A stretch of DNA of 64,000 nt from Anthoceros angustus (lineage: Eukaryota > Plantae > Anthocerotophyta): the NCBI GenBank assembly GCA_010909165.1, contig MU008181.1:868001-932000 (forward strand), read 5' to 3'. Below the pieces are notes generated by a model. That model made no database searches and was not told where the DNA came from. It saw only the letters and a list, made by a program, of their open reading frames with translations. Position 1 is the stretch's first letter; every line of letters begins with the position of its first letter. The translations under genes and the position numbers were made by a program. Of the stretch, positions 3,801-62,940 are shown piece by piece.

Positions 3801-4372
3801 GTAGGATTGGCCGTCGTAATAGTAGAAAAGAGAAAAACGTCCAAAGGTTTGCCTATGATCTTATGAGCGAGATACTTCAAACGGACAGCCGGGGTAGAGA
3901 ATTAGGGCAGAGGCAATGACTTTTTTTAATACTTCCACCAGGATAGCGCTATGACATATTGTATCTATATAGGCTGTGGTTCAAAGACACAACAATACTC
4001 GAGAGAAATCAGTTGATTGCAAATTACAATGTAGGCTCCAAAGTCCAAGGAGTCTGTCGGTCCTTGGACCATGGATAGGGGACGCATGAAGCAAGTTTAT
4101 CGGGCCGGAGGGAGCTCAGGAGGATCATTCATGGGGAGCCCAGGAGGGTCATTCATGGGGAGCTCATGGACTTTGTGGCAAGGCTGTATGACATTCGGTT
4201 GGCGTTGGTGAATCGACATCCGGACAGTGACACAGAAGACTGCTAGGACTCCCTCGGAGTGGAACTTGGAAAAGGACATTGCTCGATATCTTTGCTGGTC
4301 TCTTTTGTGAGCGTTGTAGGCACCTATATATGTATGTGAGGGGGAGGCGAAAGTATTGTTGGATCCCTGGAG

Positions 4373-7300
4373 ATGGATTCAGCGAGAGGACAGGATGCCT
4401 CGGGCCCGCCCAGAGGAGCACCGCGCGGGGTGTGCGGCCAGGAGTTTGCTGCTGCCCGAGCATTGGAGATCAAGGCTCTTCACGCCGTGCTCAAGGAGAG
4501 CCCCGTTTCTAGGTCTGAAGTTTTGCCTCGCCATCTCCGACGGCGGACCACCAGTCATAATCGGCGGCAGAGTACTTTCTGGACAAAGAAGCTGAGGATG
4601 AGAAAAACCGGTAGAGATAGTAAGCAACCAATGGAGGGAGAGGGGGATGAGGGGGAGAACACGCAGATGAAGCCTCCTAGCAGGCGGGTGAGGCGGCGGT
4701 TGGAGCTGAAGGGGGACCCCGGAGGCGGGGGAGGCAAGTCCCGGGATGGTACCCAGCGCCTGGTTACGCACGTCTGGCATGCCAAGAGATTAAAAATGAC
4801 GAAGTTGTGGGGGCACTGGCTGGCAGAAGGTTTTACTGGCAGGTAATTTGATGGTGTAAGGGAAGCACTAGTTTTTGTTTTTGGACTCTCTTGTAGTTGC
4901 GATGTTTTGACTATTGCCTTCTATCCTGTAGGGGGAAAGGTTCCAGGGCTGTGATCAAGTGGACGAAGGAGTGTGCTCTTCTCCATGACGCAAGTTATTA
5001 CAGTCCTATCGAGCTGGAGGGAGCTGCTGTAAGAGTTTAATGTTGTTGTCATTTTAGGGGCGTGTATTGGTTACTCTAGGGGTTGTTTCTAAGCGTTTCA
5101 GGGATGGGGCAGGGCGATATCCTCCATGTCCTGTCTGCGGTGCTGGACCCCCCTCCACTTGGACTTCAGGAGGTGATGAAAAGTGAAGAGTTTGCAGGTG
5201 CACGATATGGCAATGCTGTGGTGCGTGACATATACGAAATCATCTATCGTGGTCTTTATTTATTTTGAGAGGAATGGTCTAGGTGCGGCAAATGTGCTAA
5301 GTTTGAAACAAGGCTATGCCCTGCTTCGTTCGTATTCACCACCTTTCTTTGGCATGCAGCTCCACCAGCCAGGAAGAGCTCCTCATAGGACTGTTAGTCC
5401 TGTTCAGTATATGTGGCGTCCGACCTGTCCTGCAAACCTGTCAAATGACAGTGGGGAGGAAGAAGTGTCAGTAGCACTTGCAGTTACACGTCATCTTTGG
5501 ATATGGGTTCATCCTGCCGCTCACGAGGAGTCGGTGGAATCACTTCAGGGAGCGTGCAAATTGCAGGTACAGGATACTGCAGACTGTTAGCTGTAGATTA
5601 AGCATCATAAGTGCTTCATGATTGGTTTTAGATGGTCGAGGTCTCATAGTTTTCGACCTTTTCAGGGTGGCTTGGTCAATTGTCGGTCAAGGAGTGGGGA
5701 ATTTGGAAGGCTTGATGTTCTAGGAAGTGGTTCATTGCAAGTCATGCAGAAAGTGCTGCATCCTTATCTTAGGTATGTCACTATCAGAAGAGTGCTGCGA
5801 ATCGGAGTGGGCCAATCAGGGATGTAGGTTCTGACCTCCTTGTATTGTTTACAGAAGCCCCTCACCTAGTGGGAACTGTGAGGAGAAGTCTCAAGACAGG
5901 CTGCAACTGGGAATTCCTGAGATTGAAGCATGTCCAAAGGAGATCAGTCAATCATCAAAACCTGTCCCAGTTGAGCTCTTTGCCAAAGCAGACAATTCTC
6001 TCCCTGGAAGAGCGATTTTGGCCATGGATGTTTATGATCCTCGGGATGCCCCTGACAAGCAAGCCAAATACCTTCCAAGACCGTATTCTATCATTTCCAA
6101 TGCGTCCATGACAAATCAAGACAGTTGCATGGAGGAAGAAGACTGCAGGGATTTGACGAAGGCTGGTGCGGGCAGCCAGGTTACTGAGCTCATTGCAGAG
6201 ACTGACTGTGTGGCTCAACATTGGTGGCATCCGCTCCAGAAGGGGGCTACCCGGGAAACAGAACCTTGTACGTGGGGACTTCCATTGACAGAGAAAGCTC
6301 TAAGTGCAAAGAGGCATCAACAGCGGTTATGTCTGTTTGATCCCTCAAAATCAGGACAAAGGAATGAGACTGTGCAGTCTGGGGGCTCTTCAGGATGCTC
6401 TGTGTTGCTCTTGAGACACGAACATCAATCTCCATCTGCTTGTGGGTAAGAACGTCTGACCTGAATTTAGTTTCTTGCTAGTTAAGAATTTCCCTCTTTA
6501 TGTGGGTTCACCTGAGGGACCTTGGTGCAGGTGGTCTATCATCATGCCCATATCTTGGGTTCGAGCATTCTGGGTACCTCTTGTATTCGCTGGAGGCCAT
6601 GTGATTGGCCTGAGAGAGCTGCGATGGTTGATGACTGATGTGAGTCCTTGTTCTCACTGGTATTTTTAGTCCAGCTGCAGCAACTAGTGACTGTAGTGGA
6701 GTTGGTGTCGTTTCCGTTTCTTCAAACCGTCTTGACCAGTGTTGCTTTGGAATGCAGGCTGGACTTCCTTCGTTTCCTTTTGATTACCCTGATTGCACGG
6801 CTTATGATCAGTATATGCATGAGAAGACAGCTTTGGAGCTGGAAGGCAACAACAAACGTCCCCCCGGAAAGCGGATACCGCTCTGTGCACCCTCCTCATG
6901 GGGTTTCCAGTATGAAAAACAAACAGTAGCTACTACGGACTTAAGTCATTGTGAATTCAAAGTGCAAGCGGGCCCTGATTGCAGTGCCGCGAACACAGAT
7001 ATCCGCAGTCTGGTTGTTGATGGTAGTGCTAATTCAGAAGGATGTGTGGTGGACGCTGAAGATTCAAAGTTGGCTGGAAATGAGTCCACCGAGCCTCAAA
7101 TGGTAGTGTGTGGAACTGGTAGTGGTCAGCAAATGAAGGCACATGATCAGGCCCCAGATGCTGATGGCCCAGTTTCCACAATAGCAACAGTCGAAACACG
7201 GACAGAAGTCCCAGCTCAAGTTCTACATACATGCTCAACGTCGTCACGCGAAAATCAGTCAACCAGCTTTGTCGCCCGGAGTCTGGCTGCGATCACTCAA

Positions 7301-8135
7301 GCTCTTGACGTTGAGGGTATGTTGCATTTGCAGGCGGGTTTCGGCGCAAATGCAGTTTCAGGAGCAACTTACTCCACCCTGAGGAAAGGAGATACTTGCT
7401 TTGTAAGAGTTCTTATCAGGGCTCCAAGGAAGGGATTAATCGAGGAAGGGGCTCTTGTGTGCCTGCCTGCCGCAGAAGATACAGATGCCTGGTTCAGCAG
7501 GTGATCGTTCATGCCTTCATGACGTTGTTTGACACTTCAGGTTATGATCATGCCATCCTTGCTGCTTTATCCTTCTAACAGAATCGACTGGCTGGATGGA
7601 CCAGACTGATACAATGGCAGGGACACCATCTCAAAGGACACGATAAAAAGAGAAAAAAGAAAGACGAAGTTGAACAGTCAGGAGCGAAACTCACAGCAGG
7701 TGAGGGGCAGCGGAAGAGAAGGAAGCTATCCTCTTCAAGCTTCTCCTCAGCAGAGAAACCCGCCCTAGCAGAAGAGCCAGAAGCAAGACCGAGTCTGGAG
7801 TGCAGGGAGCCCATTGGATTTGTGACGTCCTCTGAAGTTCGCGGCAGGTGAGGCTCTCCTGTGCAACTAACTTCATTCTAGAGTTGAAGCATCAGTAGTA
7901 ATTGAAACACCCTTTTGACACTAGAATGCTTTGTCCCAGCAACCCTGCAAAGGCCGTCGCTTTCTGCGAGCTGGTGAAGCTGAGGTCGGCCCAGGACTCA
8001 GACTGGCGTTGGGACAACACCGAGGAGATATTCTTGCTTGTCCGCAACCCGCGATCGGACGTGTACAGACCTGCGCTAGCTACCGTAGTTGTGGACTACC
8101 TGTTGAACCTTGGAAGCCAATCGGTTCCACACTAG
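4373..8135 (+). CDS. POP1: Ribonuclease P/MRP protein subunit POP1 (multi-exon)
   Basis: Exon 1 (4373-4842) has LPRHLRRRTTSHN and RLVTHVWHAKRLKMTKLWG (POP1 N-domain). Internal exons include LHQPGRAPHRTVSPVQYMWRP, RHLWIWVHPAA, WSIIMPISWVRAFWVPL and GLPSFPFDYPDC. C-terminal exons have REPIGFVTS and IFLLVRNPRSDVYRPALAT...*. Exons have GT-AG boundaries; some internal junctions were not resolved exactly. Confidence 0.93.
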
Positions 8136-36570: not shown

Positions 36571-37559
36571 GGTGAGATATATTGGGATTCGGGGCTTTCA
36601 GTGCCAGTATCTGATCAGCTTGGCGAGAATGAAGTGGAGTTCAAGATTTCAGCGTCATACAATTGGGGTAAGGTCGTCGAACGTGGGTGATGAGCAGCTC
36701 GTTTGTTTGGAAATGCAGGTAGACCATGGTGCCAGGGTCCAGCTCCCACCCATCGAAGTCGATCTCTTGGGATATCTAAGCCGGAACCTGGCAGGCGAGC
36801 AGGATCGGGTGTGGTGGTCATAGCGGCAGCGGCTGGGTTGGACTTGTAGTCCCAACGAATTGACAGAAGAGGCAGCAGAATGTGAAGCTATCCTGCCAAG
36901 GGCAGCCCGTCGCTGCCTCCTCCTCCTGCTGCTGCTGCATGGTCCGGGCTGGCCACCAAGCCCTCCAGGCCCCAGCCAGTCTCCAGGCTCACATCCCTGA
37001 TTATATACGGTGGCCACGATCTTGTGCAACCCGTGTGGGGGATCCGTACGCGTCTTAACGTTGTTGGAGCTTTCCAAAGTTCGTCTCGTTACGAGAAGAG
37101 AAGATTGGGGCAATCAATGAAGCAATTTTGATTCCCTACAAAACTGGTTCCCCGAAGTAGATGGTTCTACCATGTGAGAGCAGCAATGGCTTGTCCTAAG
37201 ATGGTGTGTTACCAAGTGTTGTTAGACGGCAGCCAGCTTTATAAAAGAATTCTTCACCACAGGACGAAGACTTTCCAGTTATAAGAGATGAGGCTACAGC
37301 TAGAGAGTTATTCCTTAGCAACCGAACCACATTCTTGTTGGCATTGACGTACCGAAATACTGTGGGAGCTTAGAGGAGGAGATCGACAAATGGGAACCTA
37401 GTGGGTGTGTGCTTTGTGTGTGTGTGTGTGTAATCTTACCAGGCTAAAGGATTTCACAACCAGCAGAACGTCACAGGATCAGCAGCAAACCCGAATGAAT
37501 TTAGCGTAGCAGGGCATGGGGCTGTTGGAAGCCCGTCGTCTCTCAGTACCATACAAGAA

Positions 37560-37990
37560 GAGCATGACATTCGTGTGCCTCCTGCAGGCATGTGCAAGTG
37601 CGGACCTCCAGCGCTGTTGGAAAGGGGAAGCATCTTCTTGTGTATATCCGAGAACAAGGACATGAAGCTAGCTGGTGCAGTGTTGTATGCAAAGTGTGAT
37701 AAGCTTGGAAAGATGCTCAGAAAGTTTTTGATGCACTTGGTTGCAGTGGTTGATAGACTCGCTCAATAGAAGGCATGGCTATAGCCAATCCCGTGACATT
37801 TCTGTGCCTCCTGCAAGCATGTGCCAGTTGGGGACCATGTGCAGCTTTAAGGAAGGGACAGGCTGCATCTTCATGCTGAGATATATTACAGAACAAGGGC
37901 GTGAATCTGAGGTTGTGTGCAGCCAGGCGGCTGATGAATATTTATGAAAAGTGTGGCAGCGCCGAAGGTACGCTCACTGGGTAGTGTTTG
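37560..37990 (+). pseudogene. PLS-class pentatricopeptide repeat (PPR) gene fragment, frameshifted
   Basis: MTFVCLLQACAS, LYAKCDKL...AQKVFDAL, NPVTFLCLLQACAS and RLMNIYEKCGSAE occur across shifting frames. Confidence 0.8.
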
Positions 37991-38641
37991 GTGTACTTAA
38001 AAAATGTGGTGACTTGGCCTAATGTGATAGCTATCGGTTCCCTAAGGGGCATGGGACGGGGAGCCCTTTGTGTGTACAGTGCTGTGCAAGAAGATGACAA
38101 GTCTGCATAATAGTGCTGGAATGTGTAACAGTGAGCAATGTGCTGTTGTTTCACCGGCCTGCCCTCCTGTAGCGGAATAATCTGTGAATGCACCTGAACT
38201 GCAAACGCAAAGAAAACGGAAGGGTTTAACTTGACCTTAAAAGGAATGTAACGACAACGAACCTAACTCAACAAGGAATCAGCACTTCAGTCATAAGTTG
38301 ATCGATTTACAAGTATGCAGCCATGCAGCAGTTGGCGCAGTGACGAAGTTGGGATACCGGAAAGCATCAAAAGGTGTAGGCATTGCGTGCGAAGCGGAAA
38401 ACTTAGCCAGCTGTGCAGCCACTTGTGATGGGTCTAAATGAGATTCGCAGGAGGCATTCGGTTCAAAGGCATTGGCCTCCAATTCCCGAGCAGGACCCAT
38501 CCGTTCCCAAGTACCAACAGAGGCTGTGCAGCCACTTGTGATGGGTGAAGATGAGTTTGGCAGGAGGCATTTGGCTCAAAGGAATTGAACCCCAATTCCC
38601 AAGAAGGAATCACCCAGCTCTTACACTAAAAGCATCACTTG

Positions 38642-39700
38642 TTACAGCCCTTGGCCACGACACAGACCACACCAGCCGAGGTATGATTCTTCGCCATTTG
38701 GGGCATGCTCAATTCCCAAAGGACAACACTTAGGGCCTCGACACTTGACAAGGCCTCTTTCTCCCGAAAAGTGACAGGAGTCACATAAGTGAGCAGTTCC
38801 AAAGCGCAAAAGTAAGTAGCCACGGAGCAGCAATATCTGCACTTAAATTCCATATAACCAGTGCCATGGCCTGATACCTTGCATATTCCATGGCCAGCTG
38901 CGGCAGCAGAACAGCGGCCACCACGTAAACTTGCGCGGATCATAACCGTCTCCCCTGCACGATCGAGGATGATTGGTAAAAGCTTGCAAACGACTCTAGA
39001 AGACCTTGAATCAATGAACAAGAGAAAATGACTCGTCTCCTGCCATACCCTAAACCCTAACCCCGGGGATACTTCGTCATGGCACCCATCACTGATCCTT
39101 CGTTGCTTCTCTCTTCTACGCCTTGTGTACCCTCCGCTTCTAAAACTTCCACACACTCCACAACTTCCACGCCTTGTATCCCACTTGCTCCATCTTGAGC
39201 CGCTGCATGACCATATGCCCAACGTGCACAACGACATGACTGAGGATCTCTTTGCATGATATGAACGGATGTTGCTTCACCAAGAACGTGCACATCCTCG
39301 TGTTATCTCTCATGCCCACGAAAGCTAATTTTGGGGAACCACTCATCAATCGGCCTCTTTGCACGGTGAAAGTGCACCATATGCCCGCAGGCCCGACATG
39401 CATTCTCACTGTCGCGAAAGAAAGAGCGTCCAGAAATGCGATTGGGGTTAGCAAAACCACCTCTAGACAGGGAAGGCAAGTACGATCGTCGTCAACTCCT
39501 CCACAGCGATGCCCACATTACGTAAGCGTCAGCAGCTCCCTACAGTCCGATTCCGAGCAAACAGCAGAAGCAAGATTCGACACCTGCACAAAGTCTCTCC
39601 TGTAGCCAAGCAGCAAACCGTGCAAGTGCTGGAGTAACTCGCAGTTTCCGCGGTTACGCCCCTTCCGTATCCTGCAGGCCTGCCAAGCTAGCTCAGGATC
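38642..39700 (-). pseudogene. Decayed MYCBP2/RPM-1/Highwire-type C-terminal module (B-box-like, RING-H2, tandem-cysteine/RCR domain)
   Basis: Collinear motifs across frameshifts and stops: [89 protein letters not shown] then +2 nt FGTAHLCDSCH; CPLGIEHAPNGEESYLGWCGLCR*. These match, in order, the MYCBP2 motifs as I recall them: [94 protein letters not shown]. Confidence 0.85.
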
Positions 39701-40367
39701 ATCCGGCAAGCTCCAGCTGAATTTGCAGCTACGCAGCCCCAGGTTGCTGGACGATACACATCCTTTCCGACGGGCTGCCTGTTGGGCAAGGGTGCTCCTA
39801 AGTATTTGTGGAATTGTGTTCCCGCCTAATTCGCCCCTTATCGGTTCTTTGTACGACACAATGAGAGGCAAATGCGAGGTGAGGCAGCTTGGGTTCGGGC
39901 GGGTGACAGGTGGATTGCGCAAGCCGGAACTGTTGCGTGGGATCGCCATCCGACATGCCCCCTCCTGCGGTTTGACAAATCAGGGCAAGCTGTTAGGATG
40001 GCGATGGAGCCTCATGGACTTGTTGCTTCTTTGTGGGCTGTGGCAGGCCCTCGTCGTTCTGAAATCCTGAGCGGCAGTTGGCCAGCCAATCTCTTGTGTC
40101 ATGTCCCAGCATGGTTTGGGTTGGCAGAGAGTGCTGTCGTCCTATGTCCGGGGAAAGGGACAGCCTCTGCCAGATCGAGGCGTAGCCTATAAGCCGAAAT
40201 TCAGAGAAATTCCATATGAGCAGCCGACCCGCGCTTTGGGGGGGAAAAAAGGGCTTGGCGAGGGGAGCATTTTTTGGGGGAAAAAGACGATGACACGCAG
40301 CAGAGTGATGGGGAGAAAGCTCGCGTAGCTTGCAAGAATTGGAGAAAGCGGAAGCGGAAGCGGAAGC

Positions 40368-41230
40368 ATGGCGTGGATCACCAGGTTCGTGGCGATGCTC
40401 TGTTTCCTGGCTGCGGGGCTGGTGGTGTCGCCGGAGGCCTGGACGGGCAGGCTGAAGGATGCAGGAGGCCTGTCGGAGCAGGAGAGTTTCCCGACCAGTG
40501 GAGGCCTGGTGGCGTTGCGGCTGGCGCATCTTCTCAGTTTCGCCACGGCTTTCGGGTCCTCGCTCTGGGTCACCTTCATCGGCGGCATCATCATGTTCAA
40601 GTAGGATTGAGTGCGGAATTGGTTGATTGATTGATTGCAGCAGCTGGTTTGATTGCCAGGCATCGGCATCTCAGTTTGCCCTTGCCCCTGTCGTGCGCAG
40701 GCATCTGCCTCGGCACCAGTTCGGCAATCTGCAGGCCCAGATGTTTCCCGTCTTCTTTAAGTTGGTTGCCGCCTGTGCCGCCATCTGCACCGCGGCGTTC
40801 GCTACCCTGCATCCCTTGAGTTCTGCGAGCGGGCTGGAGAGGTTGCAGCTGGCGTCGCTGGGAGCCTCGCTTTTCTTTATCTTCCTCAATCTCGCCTTCT
40901 TCCAGCCGCTCACCATCAAGGTGAGTTGCATTTTCGGGGCCGCTGAGGAAGGCTGTTTTTCAGGCTGTTGTGGTGAGGGTTAACGGGGCAGTGTGTGGAA
41001 TTCTTGGATGGCAGCTGATGCGGGAGAGGCATAAGATTGAGCGGGAGGAGAACATCGGGGACGAGGTTGGCAGGTCCAAGAACCTGGAGGTTGCGAAGCG
41101 GAGCCCCAAGCTGGCTGCTATGAACAAGCGATTTGGGATGGTTCATGGATTGTCGTCTTTGTCCAATCTGTTTGCTTTCGGAGGCTTCGCAGTCCACTCC
41201 TGGTACCTCGCGGGCAGACTGGTTCTGTAG
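40368..41230 (+). CDS. TMEM205: TMEM205 / DUF4149 membrane protein, 3 exons
   Basis: Exons 40368-40600, 40701-40920 and 41015-41230 with GT-AG introns. Motifs: HLLSFATAFGSSLWVTFIGGIIMF, LPRHQFGNLQAQMFP, MNKRFGMVHGLSSLSNL. Confidence 0.92.
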
Positions 41231-41284
41231 GGCGGAATTTGGATAGTGTTTGCAAGAGTGACACAAGGCAGGGACTAGACCCTT

Positions 41285-43117
41285 TCAGAATTTATTCAAG
41301 AATTTTAGGTAAGCCTGTATATAGTTCCGCTTTGCTGGTATCAAGTGTCCGAATTCGTGCCTGATGGAAACTGCAGAACCTGGCTTGAACGTGGATGCTA
41401 ACTGCTGGCTTTCTGAGGGAGTGATCTGTCTGTCATGGCCAACGTCTCCGCCGTAGATGTGTAGTGACGGGCAGTCTACAAGCACGCCGGCTGGCATGGC
41501 CAGGACGTGCTCAGGGGCAGGGGATAGGAAGCCTGAACAACAAATTACAAACCTGAAATCCACCAGTTTCAGTGGATCTGTAGAACGAGCAGCACATAGA
41601 GCTGCAGCTATTGCCGCACCCTGTGAGAAACCCAGCACTCCATCGAAGGGGCCTTGTTCCGCAAACACGTTCTGCAGAAAGAGCCATGTTCCTGCCCATC
41701 CTGCGGTTTGGGTTTTGTATTGCAGTGGGTCGAAGGATCCCTCCAGCACTGACCCTCTCTCCAGATGCTTTGATGCTTGCAAGGTTTCAGGAGTTACGAG
41801 CCAAGCATATTTCCTTCCAGGCACCAATAGATTCTCCAGGCTAGTTTCTGCTTCTTCAGATCTCTGCCCCATGGCACGCACAAAGGGAAGCTCGTGTGGT
41901 GCATCTACGAAGACGAAATCTGCTACCCCTTTCAGCTTCTTCCTAAAGGCTGCTGTCCTGCCCTTGAAAGTGGAGGCACTTTGTCTGAAACCGTGCAGAC
42001 ACAGGATCCGCAGCTTCTGGCTCCGCGAAAACTTGAGAGATCGAGCTATGCAGCCGTCAGCAGTGGAAGGAGATACCCCTGCTTCATCAGGCACTTCACC
42101 ATCTGTTGCAGGAGCTTTTGTAGCACCGTCAGGACTCTGACATAATTCACACACGTACACCAACCCTGATTTGTCCTCCTTGCGACAATTATCGCAGACG
42201 AGCACCAGGATACGGCACAGGGAACACCGCACCCTGGAAGAGTAGTCGTCAAACGAAGCACTGCACAGCAAGCAGGAGCCCACAACACCACCATCCAGAC
42301 TGGGGACGGATATCCTATGGTCGAACACAAAATTCTTCCCCTTGAAGAACCCACCACGTGGAAATGCCTCCAAATACCTCTGAATGCCACCCGACAATTG
42401 CAACACGTCCTGGAATCCTTCACCCTTGCAACGGATGTAGGCGGATGCCATCTCACATCTCACACCGCCTGTGCAGTACATGAGGATCCGCTTGTTCCGC
42501 AGATGGTCTTCGTTCCTGTCAATCCACTCTGGCAAGTCACTGTACTGACGTACCCCTGGATCCAAACACTGCACTCCCGTTGGTGGGCAGAATTTTCCTA
42601 TCCTTGTCTCGTAGACGTTCCTGGCATCCACCATCACAACTCCGGAGGGAGGTGTCGTATGCTCTGTTGCCATACAACGTTCTGCAGCGTCTTCAAGTAC
42701 CCTGTGAAACTCTTCGGGAGACAGGTGTTCTCCTGCCTGGGAGATGGAAATCTCCGTCGAAGAAGGCATGCCCAAGGTCACCAGCTCCTTCACCACACGG
42801 ACTGATAGCGAATCGAAGCCACATTGCCGAGCCATCTGCTCATCCACAGGACTTGTGCAATATGCCAGCTTGAAATCAGTGCCCTCAAAACGTGGGTTGG
42901 CAGAAACAGCCTCAACATGTACTTGCAAGGCCGCCATCTTCCCTCCAACAGTCACGCTGACTCCATCAGGCGCTACACGGATGCGTCCCACTAGACACTG
43001 ATTGCTGCAGAGCGACAAGAACCACGCTTTCGCTGCTTCTGGGTCAGGGATGCTGGCAAACTTGTAATACAGCAACACTCCCTCCTCCTCTTGCCCCTCC
43101 ATGTCACGCTGTGTCAT
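41285..43117 (-). CDS. STR6: Rhodanese-like domain protein 6 type (TrhO/UPF0176-like N-domain, rhodanese, FSH1 serine hydrolase), intronless
   Basis: Single ~610-aa ORF: VLLYYK; DARNVYETRIGKF; ILMYCTGGVRCEMASAY; QLSGGIQRYLE; FKGKNFVFDHR; LRILCLHGFRQS; GPFDGVLGFSQGA; HEFGHLIP. The ATG is at 43117 or 43102. Confidence 0.93.
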   Translation of the reverse strand: MTQRDMEGQEEEGVLLYYKFASIPDPEAAKAWFLSLCSNQCLVGRIRVAPDGVSVTVGGKMAALQVHVEAVSANPRFEGTDFKLAYCTSPVDEQMARQCGFDSLSVRVVKELVTLGMPSSTEISISQAGEHLSPEEFHRVLEDAAERCMATEHTTPPSGVVMVDARNVYETRIGKFCPPTGVQCLDPGVRQYSDLPEWIDRNEDHLRNKRILMYCTGGVRCEMASAYIRCKGEGFQDVLQLSGGIQRYLEAFPRGGFFKGKNFVFDHRISVPSLDGGVVGSCLLCSASFDDYSSRVRCSLCRILVLVCDNCRKEDKSGLVYVCELCQSPDGATKAPATDGEVPDEAGVSPSTADGCIARSLKFSRSQKLRILCLHGFRQSASTFKGRTAAFRKKLKGVADFVFVDAPHELPFVRAMGQRSEEAETSLENLLVPGRKYAWLVTPETLQASKHLERGSVLEGSFDPLQYKTQTAGWAGTWLFLQNVFAEQGPFDGVLGFSQGAAIAAALCAARSTDPLKLVDFRFVICCSGFLSPAPEHVLAMPAGVLVDCPSLHIYGGDVGHDRQITPSESQQLASTFKPGSAVSIRHEFGHLIPAKRNYIQAYLKFLNKF

Positions 43118-43353
43118 CTGCCAGAATCTTTGAGGCAAGAACTGCCGGGAAACCGACCTAGCAAGGCATAGCGTCTGCGTAAATCAAATACGCTCAATCC
43201 GCAAAGAGAGCTCCAACAACCAGACGGAGAAAAAAATTGGTCAGATCCGTATCCGGGACCACGTGACGCAAGGTGCTGATTAAGCTGATCCACGCTTTTG
43301 TCGAGCTCGTCTAAAGTAGAAAGTTTGTGTAACAAACTCCATCTCTCTTTGGC

Positions 43354-52270: not shown

Positions 52271-54551
52271 ATGTCGGCCCGGATGATGCAACGAGCGCTG
52301 AGGGAGGCGGGTGTGGCATCCATGAGTCCGGTCGCCCCTGTACCGGAGGAGGAGGTGGAGGAAGAGGAGGAGGAGGATGTGACACAAGTCGTGAGGAATC
52401 CATTTGACCTCCTCGGTCTGCAGGCAAGTTTCGGCCCGCAGATCTTCGTCATGTGGTGTGGTGTGGTGTGGTGTGTGTGGATGGAAGCATCTGTGCGGAA
52501 ACCCTAGTTTCCGGGGTTTCGGAGCTTGCTAGCACATCCCTTCGAGCATGGGCTCTGCAATTGAGTCGGCATGCAGGATGTTTTGACCTTCTGGTTGTGG
52601 CCCGTCGTGTCTCAGGATGGTGACGACGTGGATGAAGTTGAGCTGCATGAAGATACCAGTGCAAGTGCAGGTCTGGCGTATGACAGGTTTCCTGTTGCCA
52701 CTCCTGCCAAGTCGAAGAAAAAGAAGAAAGGGGGCAAAAAGAAAGGCAAAGCCTCGGTCAGGGAGAAGGAACACCTTGCAGGGACATCCGAGCAGGTTAC
52801 CGAAAGCGAAAGAGGAGTTCCTGTGGCAGAGGGTGATGCGGGTAGCAGGGATGTTGAAGCCCCTTTGCCCCAGTCAAGTGGGCGAGGCTCAGTGCAGCTT
52901 TTGGCCGTGGATCCTAAATTTCTCAGGGCCGAAAATGAGCTGAGGCGGATTTTCGGGTCTAAGGTGATCAATGCAGTGGAGCGGAAAGGTGACTCTGGAG
53001 GGTACTGGCAAAGGAGATATGGTATGAGGAGAGGGAGCAGGGCTCTGAAGAAGACCCTTTTGACTCCACCTGCACCGCGCCATGAGAGTGACCTGTTGAT
53101 GGAATGTACGAGGGTCAGGGAGGGGCTTCAGTTTTTTCGGTAACTTGTCCCCGTCATGCATCAGGCTTGTTTGCACTGTGGCTATCTGATGTCTCTGCTT
53201 TCTGGAAAGCTTTGAGTGTATATCCGGGTTCACCCTCATTTCACGTTTGTAGGTATGTGTATTCTGCTAGCTACTTGGAAACTCAGAAGGCATACGAGGA
53301 GTGCGTGAAAACCCACAATCATAATAGGATTGCCCAGCTGCTTGCTCGACATCCCTACCATGTGGAGTCTTTGTTTGCAATGGCTGAGCTGCATCGGCAC
53401 ATGGGTCAGTACCAGCAAGCAGCTCAATACTTGGAGCGATGTCTCTGTGCTATGGAGTCTGCTTGGCACCCCTTATTCGATCCCACCCTGGGTACCTGCA
53501 GACTGGACTTCTCCCATGAGCCCAACAGACCCTTTTTCCTAGCACTGTTCAGGCACATGCAACATCTGGGTAGGCGGGGATGTCATCGGACAGCACTGGA
53601 GGTGTGCAAGCTCCTGCTCTCTTTGGATTCTGATGATCCCCTTGGAGCCCTCTTTTGCATAGACTATTTTGCCTTGAGAGCAGAGCAGTACGAGTGGCTT
53701 GAGGGGTTTGTTGAAGAGTATGGGACAGACAAGCCCTTATCCCTCTTCCCAAACTTTGCTCTGTCGTTGGCTATAGCCAGGTTCAGGATTGAAGAAAAGG
53801 AGAAGCGTCCTCATGCCTCTGCTCGGCGTGCTTTGGCATCAGTGACGGAAAAAGCAGGCAGGGCAAGTTCAACCTCTCTGTTGAAGCAAGCTTTGATGCT
53901 ACATCCAACCATGCTGCCAAAAATTGTTGAGAAGGCTCCCATCAAAGAGGATGCCGCGTGGCTCAAGGTTACACAGCACCCATTTTTTTCACGGGCAACT
54001 GTGGGCTCCCCAACGCTGGAACATGTGATTTCCATTTATCTTGAGCGCAATAGTGTCCTTTGGAGGGCATCTGAGGTGCAGTGGTGGCTAAAGGAGGCTG
54101 CAACTGCCGTTGTGCAAATTGTAGACGAAAATGATGGAGAAGCTGCAACCTGGGGATGCGTGCGAGATGAAGCTTTTCAAAATGTCGAAAACGAGTGAGT
54201 CAGTTTATGGCCCTTCTGCTTTTCCATTCACAGCCGCATTGAGGTTTAAGAGTAGTACGATCTTGTGTTCTGATTTTGTTTTGGCTATGCCCTCTTGATG
54301 GCCTTTGGAATGGCAGGTATGGACACCTCCTCGTCTCGGACTTCTCTGACACCGCTGCAAGTCTTCCTCCTGAGGCGCTGCAGGAAATGGGCTTTCATGA
54401 CGTTCACGAAGTGCCTGACATCGACGAGCTCAATGCGGCTTGGTTTGAAGAAGATGACGCAGATCATGAGAATGACGCCCCTGAAGCGATGCTTGAACTC
54501 GTTCTTCGGATGTTTGGAAATTTGATGATACGCAGGGGCCTGCATGGATGA
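52271..54551 (+). CDS. TCF25: Transcription factor 25 / Rqc1 homolog (ribosome quality control), 4 exons
   Basis: MSARMMQRAL..NPFDLL; VDPKFLRAENELRRIFGSKV; HPYHVESL; RRGCHRTALEVCKLLLSLDSDDPLG; FPNFALSLAIARF; NE|YGHLLVSDFSD. Introns are GT-AG. Confidence 0.93.
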
Positions 54552-60879: not shown

Positions 60880-62940
60880 CACAACAAGGCATTTGAGTCA
60901 TCGATATATAGTAGGGGAAATCTGGTAGCCTTCGGAAGCATACTCCCTCCTGTTATTTATTGGTTTGTACCTATATCTGCGTATTAGATTTGTTTTGCTT
61001 GGTAATTTGTCGAGGAAGTGCTTATATGAATTCAAGTGCTTACCTCGTGCGACATCTTCCAAAAGGACAAACTGTTTGTCATTAGGTGCTGGAGTGAGCT
61101 TTGTAAAGGACTTCCTACGAAAACAGATATGACTAGTCGCTCCTGAATCCAAAAACTAAGTGTGAAACGAAACTTGAACAGAGGAAAGACAAATTGCTAG
61201 AATTGTTAGTTGCTTAGCTTTGGAAATAATAGTCAAGTTGCTCTCTACTGGAGACAATTCCTGATGAGGTTATGGATCCCCAGCTTTCTTCTTTTGACAA
61301 TCCTTCTCAAAATGGCTAGGTATGTTGCACCAATTGCAAGTGAAAGTCTTCCTCTGGCTGCTTGGAAATCTTCGTTGCTGACCTAAAGATGGATTACCTC
61401 TGCCTCTTCCTCTACCACAAAAACCACCTCTCCTCCTTGAAAGTGAAGAGCACCCTAGTGCTACTAGATGTATTCACATGTGCCTTGTGGAAATCGTGTG
61501 CACGCTCTTCAGACAGAAGTGTACCAATAACTTCTTCCAGAGAAATGTTGGGGGTCGTGCTCGCATCTGCCGCGCCTGCACTATTGCAAAGATGGTTGCC
61601 TTCTGACTTCCCACGAAGTTTTGGTAGCTTTCAGGAAGAGAAGCCAACAAGTTGATGGCAAGTTCGACTTCGGTCAACATGTTGCCACAATATGCCAGGT
61701 TGGCTCTATGTGTCTTGAATTTGTTGATGTATGCCTCCACGGGTTCTCCTTTCTTCATATGGAGATTCAAGAAATTTTTGTATACGTGTACGAGAGATGG
61801 TGAACTCTTATCTTGGTATATCTGCTTGAAAACTCTCCAGACATCAGAAGTGTTAGCAGCACCAATTGTATGAGGCATCACATTCTTGTTAGCAATTAGA
61901 ATAGATCTTGCACAGCTATCCTTGCGTTCCCACTCTAACTGCTTATCAGCGGGTCTAGGTGGGGTTCTGGTCTTTGGCTCTATCCCATCTACGATACTCA
62001 TGAGCTCTTGCTCCTCAAGTATCTGACCTAGTCTCATCGACCACACATGGTAATCTACACCAATAAACCTATCTTTGTCTCTAAACTCAATCGTAAGAGG
62101 TGCTAAGGCAGGTGGGTGCGATATTGTTGCAGGCACTATTACTAAGGCAAGGAGTTGCCTGGCTCCATGCAAGATGGCTGCAGGAGAGAAGTCCCATACA
62201 AAGTACTCCACTTGATAAGAGAACAGGAAAGACAGGTTGTAGACCTCTTCTTCTTACTCTAAATTAGAAACATCTTGCATAGACTTATGAACGACTGGAT
62301 TACATAAAAGACTCCCACTGCCTGATGTAGTGTAGGCTTCAGTGTTCCTTGCAAACTCTTTACAAATGTAGTCGAGTATCATGATGCTGCCGGAAAACTA
62401 TTTGATGATCTCCACCTGTACCTTGCAAGCTTCTAAAGTGAAACGAGTTGCTGTCGAAGTACAACTTTGCTTTCACGTGATCCGCTGGTAGCAACTGCTG
62501 CTGTCTTCTACGCTAAGAGGAACTTCTTAGCACCCTTTGCTATGGCAGCGAGAAGACACTGGTCGGCGAGCAAAGTGGTGACTTTCTCAACCCTGCGTAG
62601 CAGTGGCATTGGGCGGTTCCCGCGTTCTTTTGATCCGCAGTCAGGGCAAGGGTGGAAGGCCCAGAGGTCGCTCTAACCGACACAGAACACCATAGGTAAG
62701 AAGATCCTGGATGTCTTCCTTTGGACATCCTTGCCTCCGACTGAAGTCGATTAAACTGCCGTGCTCACTGATTCTATGATCCGATCGTGCAACAAGAGTC
62801 GGAAGATCAACTCGGGCTCTGATACCATAATGAAATTCAGATGCTTTCATCAGCCTACAAGCCTTATTATTGTCGGTGGAATCAAACGGGGAAGTACATT
62901 GGGGAGGAAGATACATTCATTCAATGCTCAAGAAAGAGAA
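60880..62940 (-). mobile_element. Truncated Ty1/copia LTR retrotransposon (5' LTR end, PBS, gag, zinc knuckle, protease)
   Basis: PBS TGGTATCAGAGC (tRNA-iMet; plus strand 62816-62827) lies next to an LTR end at 62831. The gag ORF 61474-62211 reads YHVWSMRL..ILEEQEL..VDG..W..KD..ARSIL. Zinc knuckle CNWCNIPSHFEKDC at ~61285-61330; protease DSGATSHIC at ~61120-61150. The LTR-end sequence recurs, diverged, at 58965-59070. Confidence 0.88.

Follow-up and report, generated by a model that had tools for sequence, protein, structure and literature searches.

A decayed green-lineage RING-Cys-relay ubiquitin ligase module in the hornwort Anthoceros angustus

The RING-Cys-relay (RCR) family of ubiquitin ligases is best known from animals. 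In human MYCBP2, the downstream and upstream relay cysteines are C4572 (in the motif AVFFC) and C4520 (in GGEARC, before the mediator loop). Structures of the human RCR module are available as PDB entries 5O6C and 6T7F. According to one review, MYCBP2 is conserved from C. elegans to mammals (PMC9120709), and the papers covered by our search present the RCR class through this protein only (PMC9120709, PMC9527308). That search turned up no description of RCR ligases from plants or algae.

We analyzed a stretch of 64,000 nucleotides from A. angustus (GCA_010909165.1, contig MU008181.1, 868,001–932,000), referred to here as the window; all coordinates are positions in it. Its minus strand carries, from 39601 to 38642, a relic of an RCR module as a series of collinear pieces, in which the pre-RING zinc motif, the RING, the linker, and the tandem-cysteine domain are represented. 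The locus is very probably a non-functional pseudogene that holds the C-terminal ~310 codons of a green-lineage RCR ubiquitin ligase gene and has since decayed neutrally.

The relic shares with the human MYCBP2 RCR the order of its motifs, namely the pre-RING CGHxCGG...CLPC, the RING, the linker helix, and a tandem-cysteine domain with a C-terminal CPLxxxHxPxGEE...GCxxCR, and it also keeps the downstream relay cysteine. It differs in being broken and in deriving from a green-lineage protein of ~300–690 aa, whereas MYCBP2 is a PHR protein of 4,600 aa. The RCC1-like, PHR, Myc-binding, and FBXO45-binding regions of MYCBP2 are absent, and no homologous sequence was found upstream of 39601. The first-pass annotation of this DNA, made from the letters alone, had described a decayed MYCBP2/Highwire-type RING plus tandem-cysteine module, and the profile and structure matches given below agree with it. 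A reading of the relic as the end of a giant PHR/Highwire-type protein has to be given up: the relatives measure ~530–690 or ~300 aa, and there is no N-terminal part upstream.

A profile made from 16 intact homologues was compared with the six-frame translation of 37000–42000, with X at stops. It gave four collinear matches, all on the minus strand: profile positions 317–368 at 39601–39461 (E 6.4e-12), 407–432 at 39392–39321 (a weak match, E 0.037), 534–576 at 38937–38806 (E 6.2e-15), and 577–630 at 38803–38654 (E 2.6e-11). Profile positions 433–533 were unmatched, though 384 nt lie there, which is roughly the right spacing; the middle third of the relic is barely recognizable, and the profile does not detect it. 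For positions 1–316 there was no minus-strand match within 37000–42000.

For two pieces, the best PDB match was MYCBP2. The translation of 38946–38794 matched chains 6T7F/5O6C (E 9e-6) at chain residues 161–195, and that of 38803–38642 (FGTAHLCDSCH...CPLGIEHAPNGEESYLGWCGLCR) matched 5O6C/6T7F (E 4e-3) at residues 196–259, so the two pieces abut in the protein but differ in frame in the DNA. Individual pieces therefore do match the MYCBP2 chains, where the annotation had named a missing match to the RING/tandem-cysteine region as counterevidence. The same search with the decayed linker stretch was uninformative.

An exhaustive HMMER search with the 51-aa piece returned 25 matches at E ≤ 1e-3, the best of them 68%–71% identical. 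These best matches were last-exon fragments from environmental and run assemblies, and the named matches included Mesostigma viride and Guillardia theta. An actinobacterial ATP-binding protein (P0003) was also returned; it matched in nine stretches on the Ala/Gly-rich part, and we took it as spurious. That such a protein can appear at all, and that Cys/His-rich motifs are short, could be held to favor a chance resemblance of cysteine-rich, out-of-frame sequence. We give that idea practically no credit, against four collinear and correctly spaced profile matches with E values down to 6e-15 and more than 40 homologues that share a break point.

Other searches were negative. The word-index protein search with the true-frame part of a 200-aa mechanical ORF gave no candidate, the query being short and a length filter being applied; Pfam found nothing relevant in the local ORFs or in the 200-aa ORF. 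Neither the relic nor its flanks has a second copy within the window, and Rfam and tRNA scans of the window found nothing.

Intact homologues of the relic occur in Diphasiastrum, Ceratodon, Ceratopteris, Chara, Mesostigma, Closterium, chlorophytes, and Guillardia. A word-index search with the M. viride protein (Mv02406, P0015) led to full-length proteins of Diphasiastrum complanatum (O6H91_13G085400, P0061; 652 aa), Chara braunii (CBR_g39123, P0062), Closterium, Cymbomonas, and Edaphochlamys. The RCR part of the Diphasiastrum protein, used as a query in its turn, added Ceratodon purpureus (KC19_2G009400, P0097; 680 aa) and Ceratopteris richardii (KP509_12G090100, P0099; 624 aa). Both searches also gave many environmental proteins, several of them labelled 'E3 ubiquitin-protein ligase MYCBP2' by JGI or KEGG, and the lycophyte, moss, and fern homologues are deposited as hypothetical or RING-type proteins. 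The expectation that seed-free plants possess RCR-type genes was thus correct, with intact homologues in a moss, a fern, and a lycophyte. The claim of novelty in plants was not, as intact homologues had already been deposited and some environmental ones carry the MYCBP2 label. No seed-plant protein appeared in these word- and length-limited searches, a result that is only suggestive of an absence of seed-plant homologues.

The relatives are of two sorts: green-lineage proteins of ~530–690 aa with an IBR-containing front half, and stand-alone RCR proteins of ~300 aa. PF01485, an IBR-type region, was found in the N-terminal half of several green-lineage members. These IBR-RCR proteins are the closest to the relic and fall in the same clade; they are intact and have the N-terminal half, and their moss-like genomic copies have introns, whereas the relic lacks both. 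The stand-alone proteins (P0007 cluster; 307 aa, from environmental assemblies) contain nothing but the RCR module and match the relic in extent, but their sequences are distant, and the tree places them opposite the relic, on a long branch.

Streptophyte and chlorophyte algae, mosses, ferns, and lycophytes have proteins in which the last ~260 residues can be aligned over their full length with the MYCBP2 RCR module, both relay cysteines included. In the intact homologue P0098, the RCR part aligns over all of 5O6C (E 4e-56), and its GGxxxC and xxYFC motifs fall on both relay cysteines. Pfam sees at most a weak RING in intact members of the family, and it has no model for the tandem-cysteine domain; a search for look-alikes in the ESM Atlas named 'MYCBP2-like' clusters first.

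From this conservation, we infer a MYCBP2-like relay activity for the plant family. A functional parent family would work in the manner of MYCBP2: its RING would bind E2~Ub, and the ubiquitin would go to the upstream cysteine, be relayed to the downstream one, and then be passed to a hydroxyl of the substrate. The family is of more interest than the relic, since an intact plant member would be a handy small enzyme with which to test whether ester-forming ubiquitination through a cysteine relay is ancient. The fossil itself is ordinary, being one more dead member of a family whose intact proteins the databases already hold, and all it contributes is evidence that genes of the RCR family turn over.

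Two environmental contigs (~41%–43% G+C) contain intact moss-like IBR-RCR genes, at 3919–8405 of L002 and 422–3366 of L006; by tblastn, the L002 gene has six exon blocks. Prokaryote-style gene calling had split both genes into exon-sized 'proteins' (e.g., P0001, P0028, and P0040).

The relic can be followed piece by piece along the minus strand. Piece 1 (39461–39601, frame 0) is the pre-RING zinc motif, recovered by the profile and by tblastn with P0061, P0098, P0062, and P0015. It has a five-residue deletion and, in the conserved block just before CGHRCGG, an in-frame TAA (39520–39518). Piece 2 (39303–39392, frame 2) is the RING core. It rests on the weak profile match, on tblastn HSPs at 39389–39321 that chain with piece 1, and on the count of conserved columns. 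An invariant RING cysteine is replaced by arginine in it, and a TAA (39305–39303) stands at the expected site of the last CPxC pair of the RING.

The next two pieces have no profile match. Piece 3 (39182–39271, frame 0) is a likely remnant of the linker helix, identified by eye and in frameshift-aware alignments; its ...MQRLKMEQV at 39208–39182 compares, by eye, with MxH...LVxEKAxKRLxMEG of the family. Piece 4 (39066–39116, frame 2), which reads EERSNEGSVMGAMTKYP, is a likely remnant of the region before the tandem-cysteine domain; also by eye, it resembles the EGRPxEYAxxLYQYY of the family, with GAMTKY at 39086–39069.

A telomere-like plant motif, CCCTAAACCCTAA, stands at 39048–39060, between two relic pieces; 0.03 matches would be expected by chance in the window. 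It is located within an apparent insertion of ~39 nt relative to the family.

Piece 5 (38936–39013, frame 0) is the decayed start of the tandem-cysteine domain. It has stops at 39013–39011 and 38998–38996 and ends in ...HPRSC-RGDGYDP (38965–38936). The RGDGYDP (38956–38936) is an exact 7-mer match, at the homologous place, to the Mesostigma protein P0015, and the rest of the piece was aligned by eye. Directly before this 7-mer is a cysteine (38959–38957) that may well correspond to the upstream relay cysteine; the GGxxxC motif expected around it has decayed, and it falls outside the profile alignment.

Piece 6 (38806–38937, frame 1) was recovered by the profile and by both the PDB and the HMMER searches. 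It keeps the downstream relay cysteine, whose codon (38808–38806) ends ATYFC and which aligns to the AVFFC cysteine of MYCBP2, as the first-pass annotation had it. The first cysteine of a CxxC pair has become glycine. Directly after the ATYFC cysteine codon, an insertion of two nucleotides (38804–38805, GC on the minus strand) puts the last 53 codons out of frame. In tblastn, all of the 40-odd homologues have one residue end at 38806 and the next begin at 38803, from which the two nucleotides are seen to be extra. Piece 7 (38642–38803, frame 0; FGTAHLCDSCH...KCRGPKCCPLGIEHAPNGEESYLGWCGLCRGQGL) is the end of the tandem-cysteine domain, supported by the profile and PDB matches, and its stop codon is kept at 38644–38642.

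Counting the motifs seen by eye, there are at least seven or eight, in agreement with the at least seven collinear motifs, broken by stops and frameshifts, of the annotation. The absence of obvious introns that it reported was likewise confirmed, as the gaps between pieces are all too short for an intron.

At least ten breaks interrupt the relic. The frames follow the order 0, 2, 0, 2, 0, 1, 0 along it, which makes at least six frame changes, and the in-frame stops described above number four; at no point is there one open frame for the RCR module. The family has 33 Cys/His columns with an invariance of 90% or more. The relic retains 22 of these and has substitutions in 2, and the other 9 belong to parts whose decay prevents alignment; the complete zinc-binding Cys/His set of the RING and the tandem-cysteine domain is therefore not present. 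A ligase cannot be made from this locus.

The opposite reading is of a working gene whose apparent breaks stem from errors of assembly, from small introns, or from recoding. We compared the window with contigs of two runs from the same sample: one DNA run, possibly from the source sample, and one possible RNA run (X2). The DNA contigs match the window except for six homopolymer runs that are 1 nt shorter (38479, 38952, 39025, 39061, 39538, and 39958), one substitution, and a two-variant bubble at 38811–38814. Six homopolymer differences in 1.7 kb and the bubble mean that base-level accuracy is imperfect in one of the two data sets, which is a point in favor of a working gene. Another is that the frame across 38804–38805 is intact in a contig variant of depth 2.7. 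Yet this variant swaps the catalytic YFC for TLR and lowers the alignment score.

The breaks themselves mostly stand. Two stops (39520–39518 and 39305–39303), the frame changes at ~39461–39392, 39321–39292, and 39182–39134, and the insertion at 38805–38804 are matched exactly by the DNA contigs. The homopolymer differences of the contigs lie near the remaining two frame changes, and the frame is not restored by them. When we applied the contig variants (the 1-nt differences at 38952, 39025, 39061, and 39538, together with the 38811/38814 variant), the frameshift-aware score fell from 338 to 332 against P0098 and from 253 to 242 against P0015. As a control, deleting the two extra nucleotides at 38804–38805 raised this score by exactly one frameshift penalty. 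The 38952 variant would join two pieces in one frame but destroys RGDGYDP, and the relic is dead whichever data set is correct there. Checked against the DNA-run contigs, the stops and most frameshifts thus persist, and the frame is not rescued. The breaks also measure 0–2 nt within conserved blocks, which leaves no space for introns; some of the invariant zinc ligands have been replaced, and the profile is blind to the middle third. With all this, we consider a working gene very unlikely and treat the locus as a pseudogene.

In X2, no contig covers 38642–39598. That X2 is RNA is a guess, and this gap is weak evidence of silence.

Across 38300–40000, the window is one base longer at the six homopolymer runs, against a single substitution, a pattern that indicates a systematic error in homopolymer length in one of the data sets. 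Such an error would bear on any frameshift call in this genome.

To place the relic among its relatives, we built a maximum-likelihood tree on 161 alignable columns; the alignment is short and the relic branch long, so the exact place is unsure. A joined conceptual translation, with X at the breaks and the last two pieces abutted at the 2-nt break, was used only for the alignment, the identity counts, and this tree. The relic falls within the green-lineage clade (SH-aLRT 95) and there within a streptophyte group (83). It lies outside the moss/fern/lycophyte clade (91), where its branch takes no firm position, and the tree has the nematode MYCBP2 sequences on its opposite side. Over the 161 columns, it is 47%–55% identical to the green-lineage IBR-RCR proteins, and identity to moss-like last exons reaches 63%.

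The annotation had allowed for a horizontal acquisition; one from animals finds no support in a tree that groups the relic with the green lineage and not with animals. A fragment of animal or other non-plant origin, or a contaminant, might be suspected on two grounds: the RCR family is best known from animals, and the RGDGYDP loop resembles the human RGDDYDP. The same RGDGYDP is shared by Mesostigma, however, the best identities (55%–63%) are to land-plant sequences, and ordinary nuclear genes surround the relic on one contig. Together with the green-lineage (95) and streptophyte (83) placements, these facts make a foreign origin extremely improbable, and we take the relic to be of green-lineage descent.

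The RGDGYDP loop is kept in the relic and replaced in the moss, fern, and lycophyte proteins. One speculative explanation, which we think rather unlikely, is that the relic comes from a second, unsampled land-plant RCR lineage with the ancestral, Mesostigma/animal-type mediator loop that was lost in those proteins. If this were true, the plant would once have had at least two anciently diverged types of RCR ligase.

The extent of the relic bears on how the copy arose. It corresponds to the C-terminal ~310 residues of the ~530–690-aa plant type, the N-terminal half being absent. Against the Diphasiastrum protein P0061 (652 aa), it covers residues ~342–651 in 954 nt, where 930 nt would be expected. 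The moss-like genes of L002 and L006 have introns at about P0061 residues 392, 488, and 546; at all three sites the relic is continuous, the comparison being with orthologues from other plants, and its length leaves no room for the three introns. The relic is thus 3′-complete, with its stop codon kept, and 5′-truncated, with homology beginning at about residue 342 of 652. This is the classic shape of a retrocopy.

Because the 3′ end and the stop are kept, the front half is missing, and the three intron sites are uninterrupted, we favor a 5′-truncated processed (retroposed) copy of the mRNA of a paralogue, with about an even chance that this is correct. The copy came to lie between a DUF4149 gene and further degenerate sequence. 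A processed pseudogene had been one of the suggestions of the annotation; it is reasonable on the uninterrupted intron sites and on the 3′-complete, 5′-truncated shape, but two usual traces are missing. There is no plus-strand T-run below 38642 that could be a poly(A) remnant, and we found no target-site duplication and no flanking direct or inverted repeats bracketing the relic.

The lack of a poly(A) trace at the 3′ end would fit a duplicate made at the DNA level, either a partial segmental one or one that covers the full length of a miniature, intron-poor RCR paralogue of ~300 aa with its start near CGHxCGG. We hold this to be a real possibility, if somewhat short of an even chance. Stand-alone RCR proteins of ~307 aa that start at CGHxCxG...CLPCL do exist (the P0007 cluster), and the RGDGYDP loop, unlike that of the moss, fern, and lycophyte orthologues, and the place outside their clade hint at a different parent lineage. 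If the parent was such a miniature paralogue, the missing front half never belonged to it. Two features weigh against a DNA duplicate and lead us to prefer a processed copy: the relic runs uninterrupted through all three positions where the closest land-plant genes sampled have introns, and it has the 5′-truncated, 3′-complete shape.

The nearest intact neighbour of the relic is the DUF4149 (TMEM205-like) gene (40368–40980, plus strand), which has at least two exons. Between the two lie short multi-copy segments (39611–39724 and 39839–39895), with a summed contig depth of 42–69 against ~7.6 nearby; there, many contigs of both runs share only 30–160 nt and then diverge. A dispersed short repeat seems to adjoin the 5′ end of the relic, with no copy elsewhere in the window.

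Directly 3′ of the relic, at 38410–38615 on the plus strand, are two direct repeats of 93 nt, 113 nt apart and 83% identical, and further repeats spaced 229–239 nt occur at 37565–37908. By eye, the plus-strand frames of 37400–38200 and 38410–38615 look like broken PPR-type repeats (TFVCLLQACAS...); Pfam was negative on the ORF pieces.

Farther away, an uninterrupted ORF of 617 aa (41288–43138, minus strand) combines UPF0176_N, Rhodanese, and Rhodanese_C domains with a C-terminal FSH1 serine hydrolase (E 2e-42); it is an intronless fusion in a region that otherwise contains introns. The window also holds a Tcf25-domain exon (53104–54195, plus strand; E 4e-81), a copia-type gag ORF (61477–62211, minus strand), and a POP1 exon (POPLD/POP1_C; 6752–7501, plus strand).
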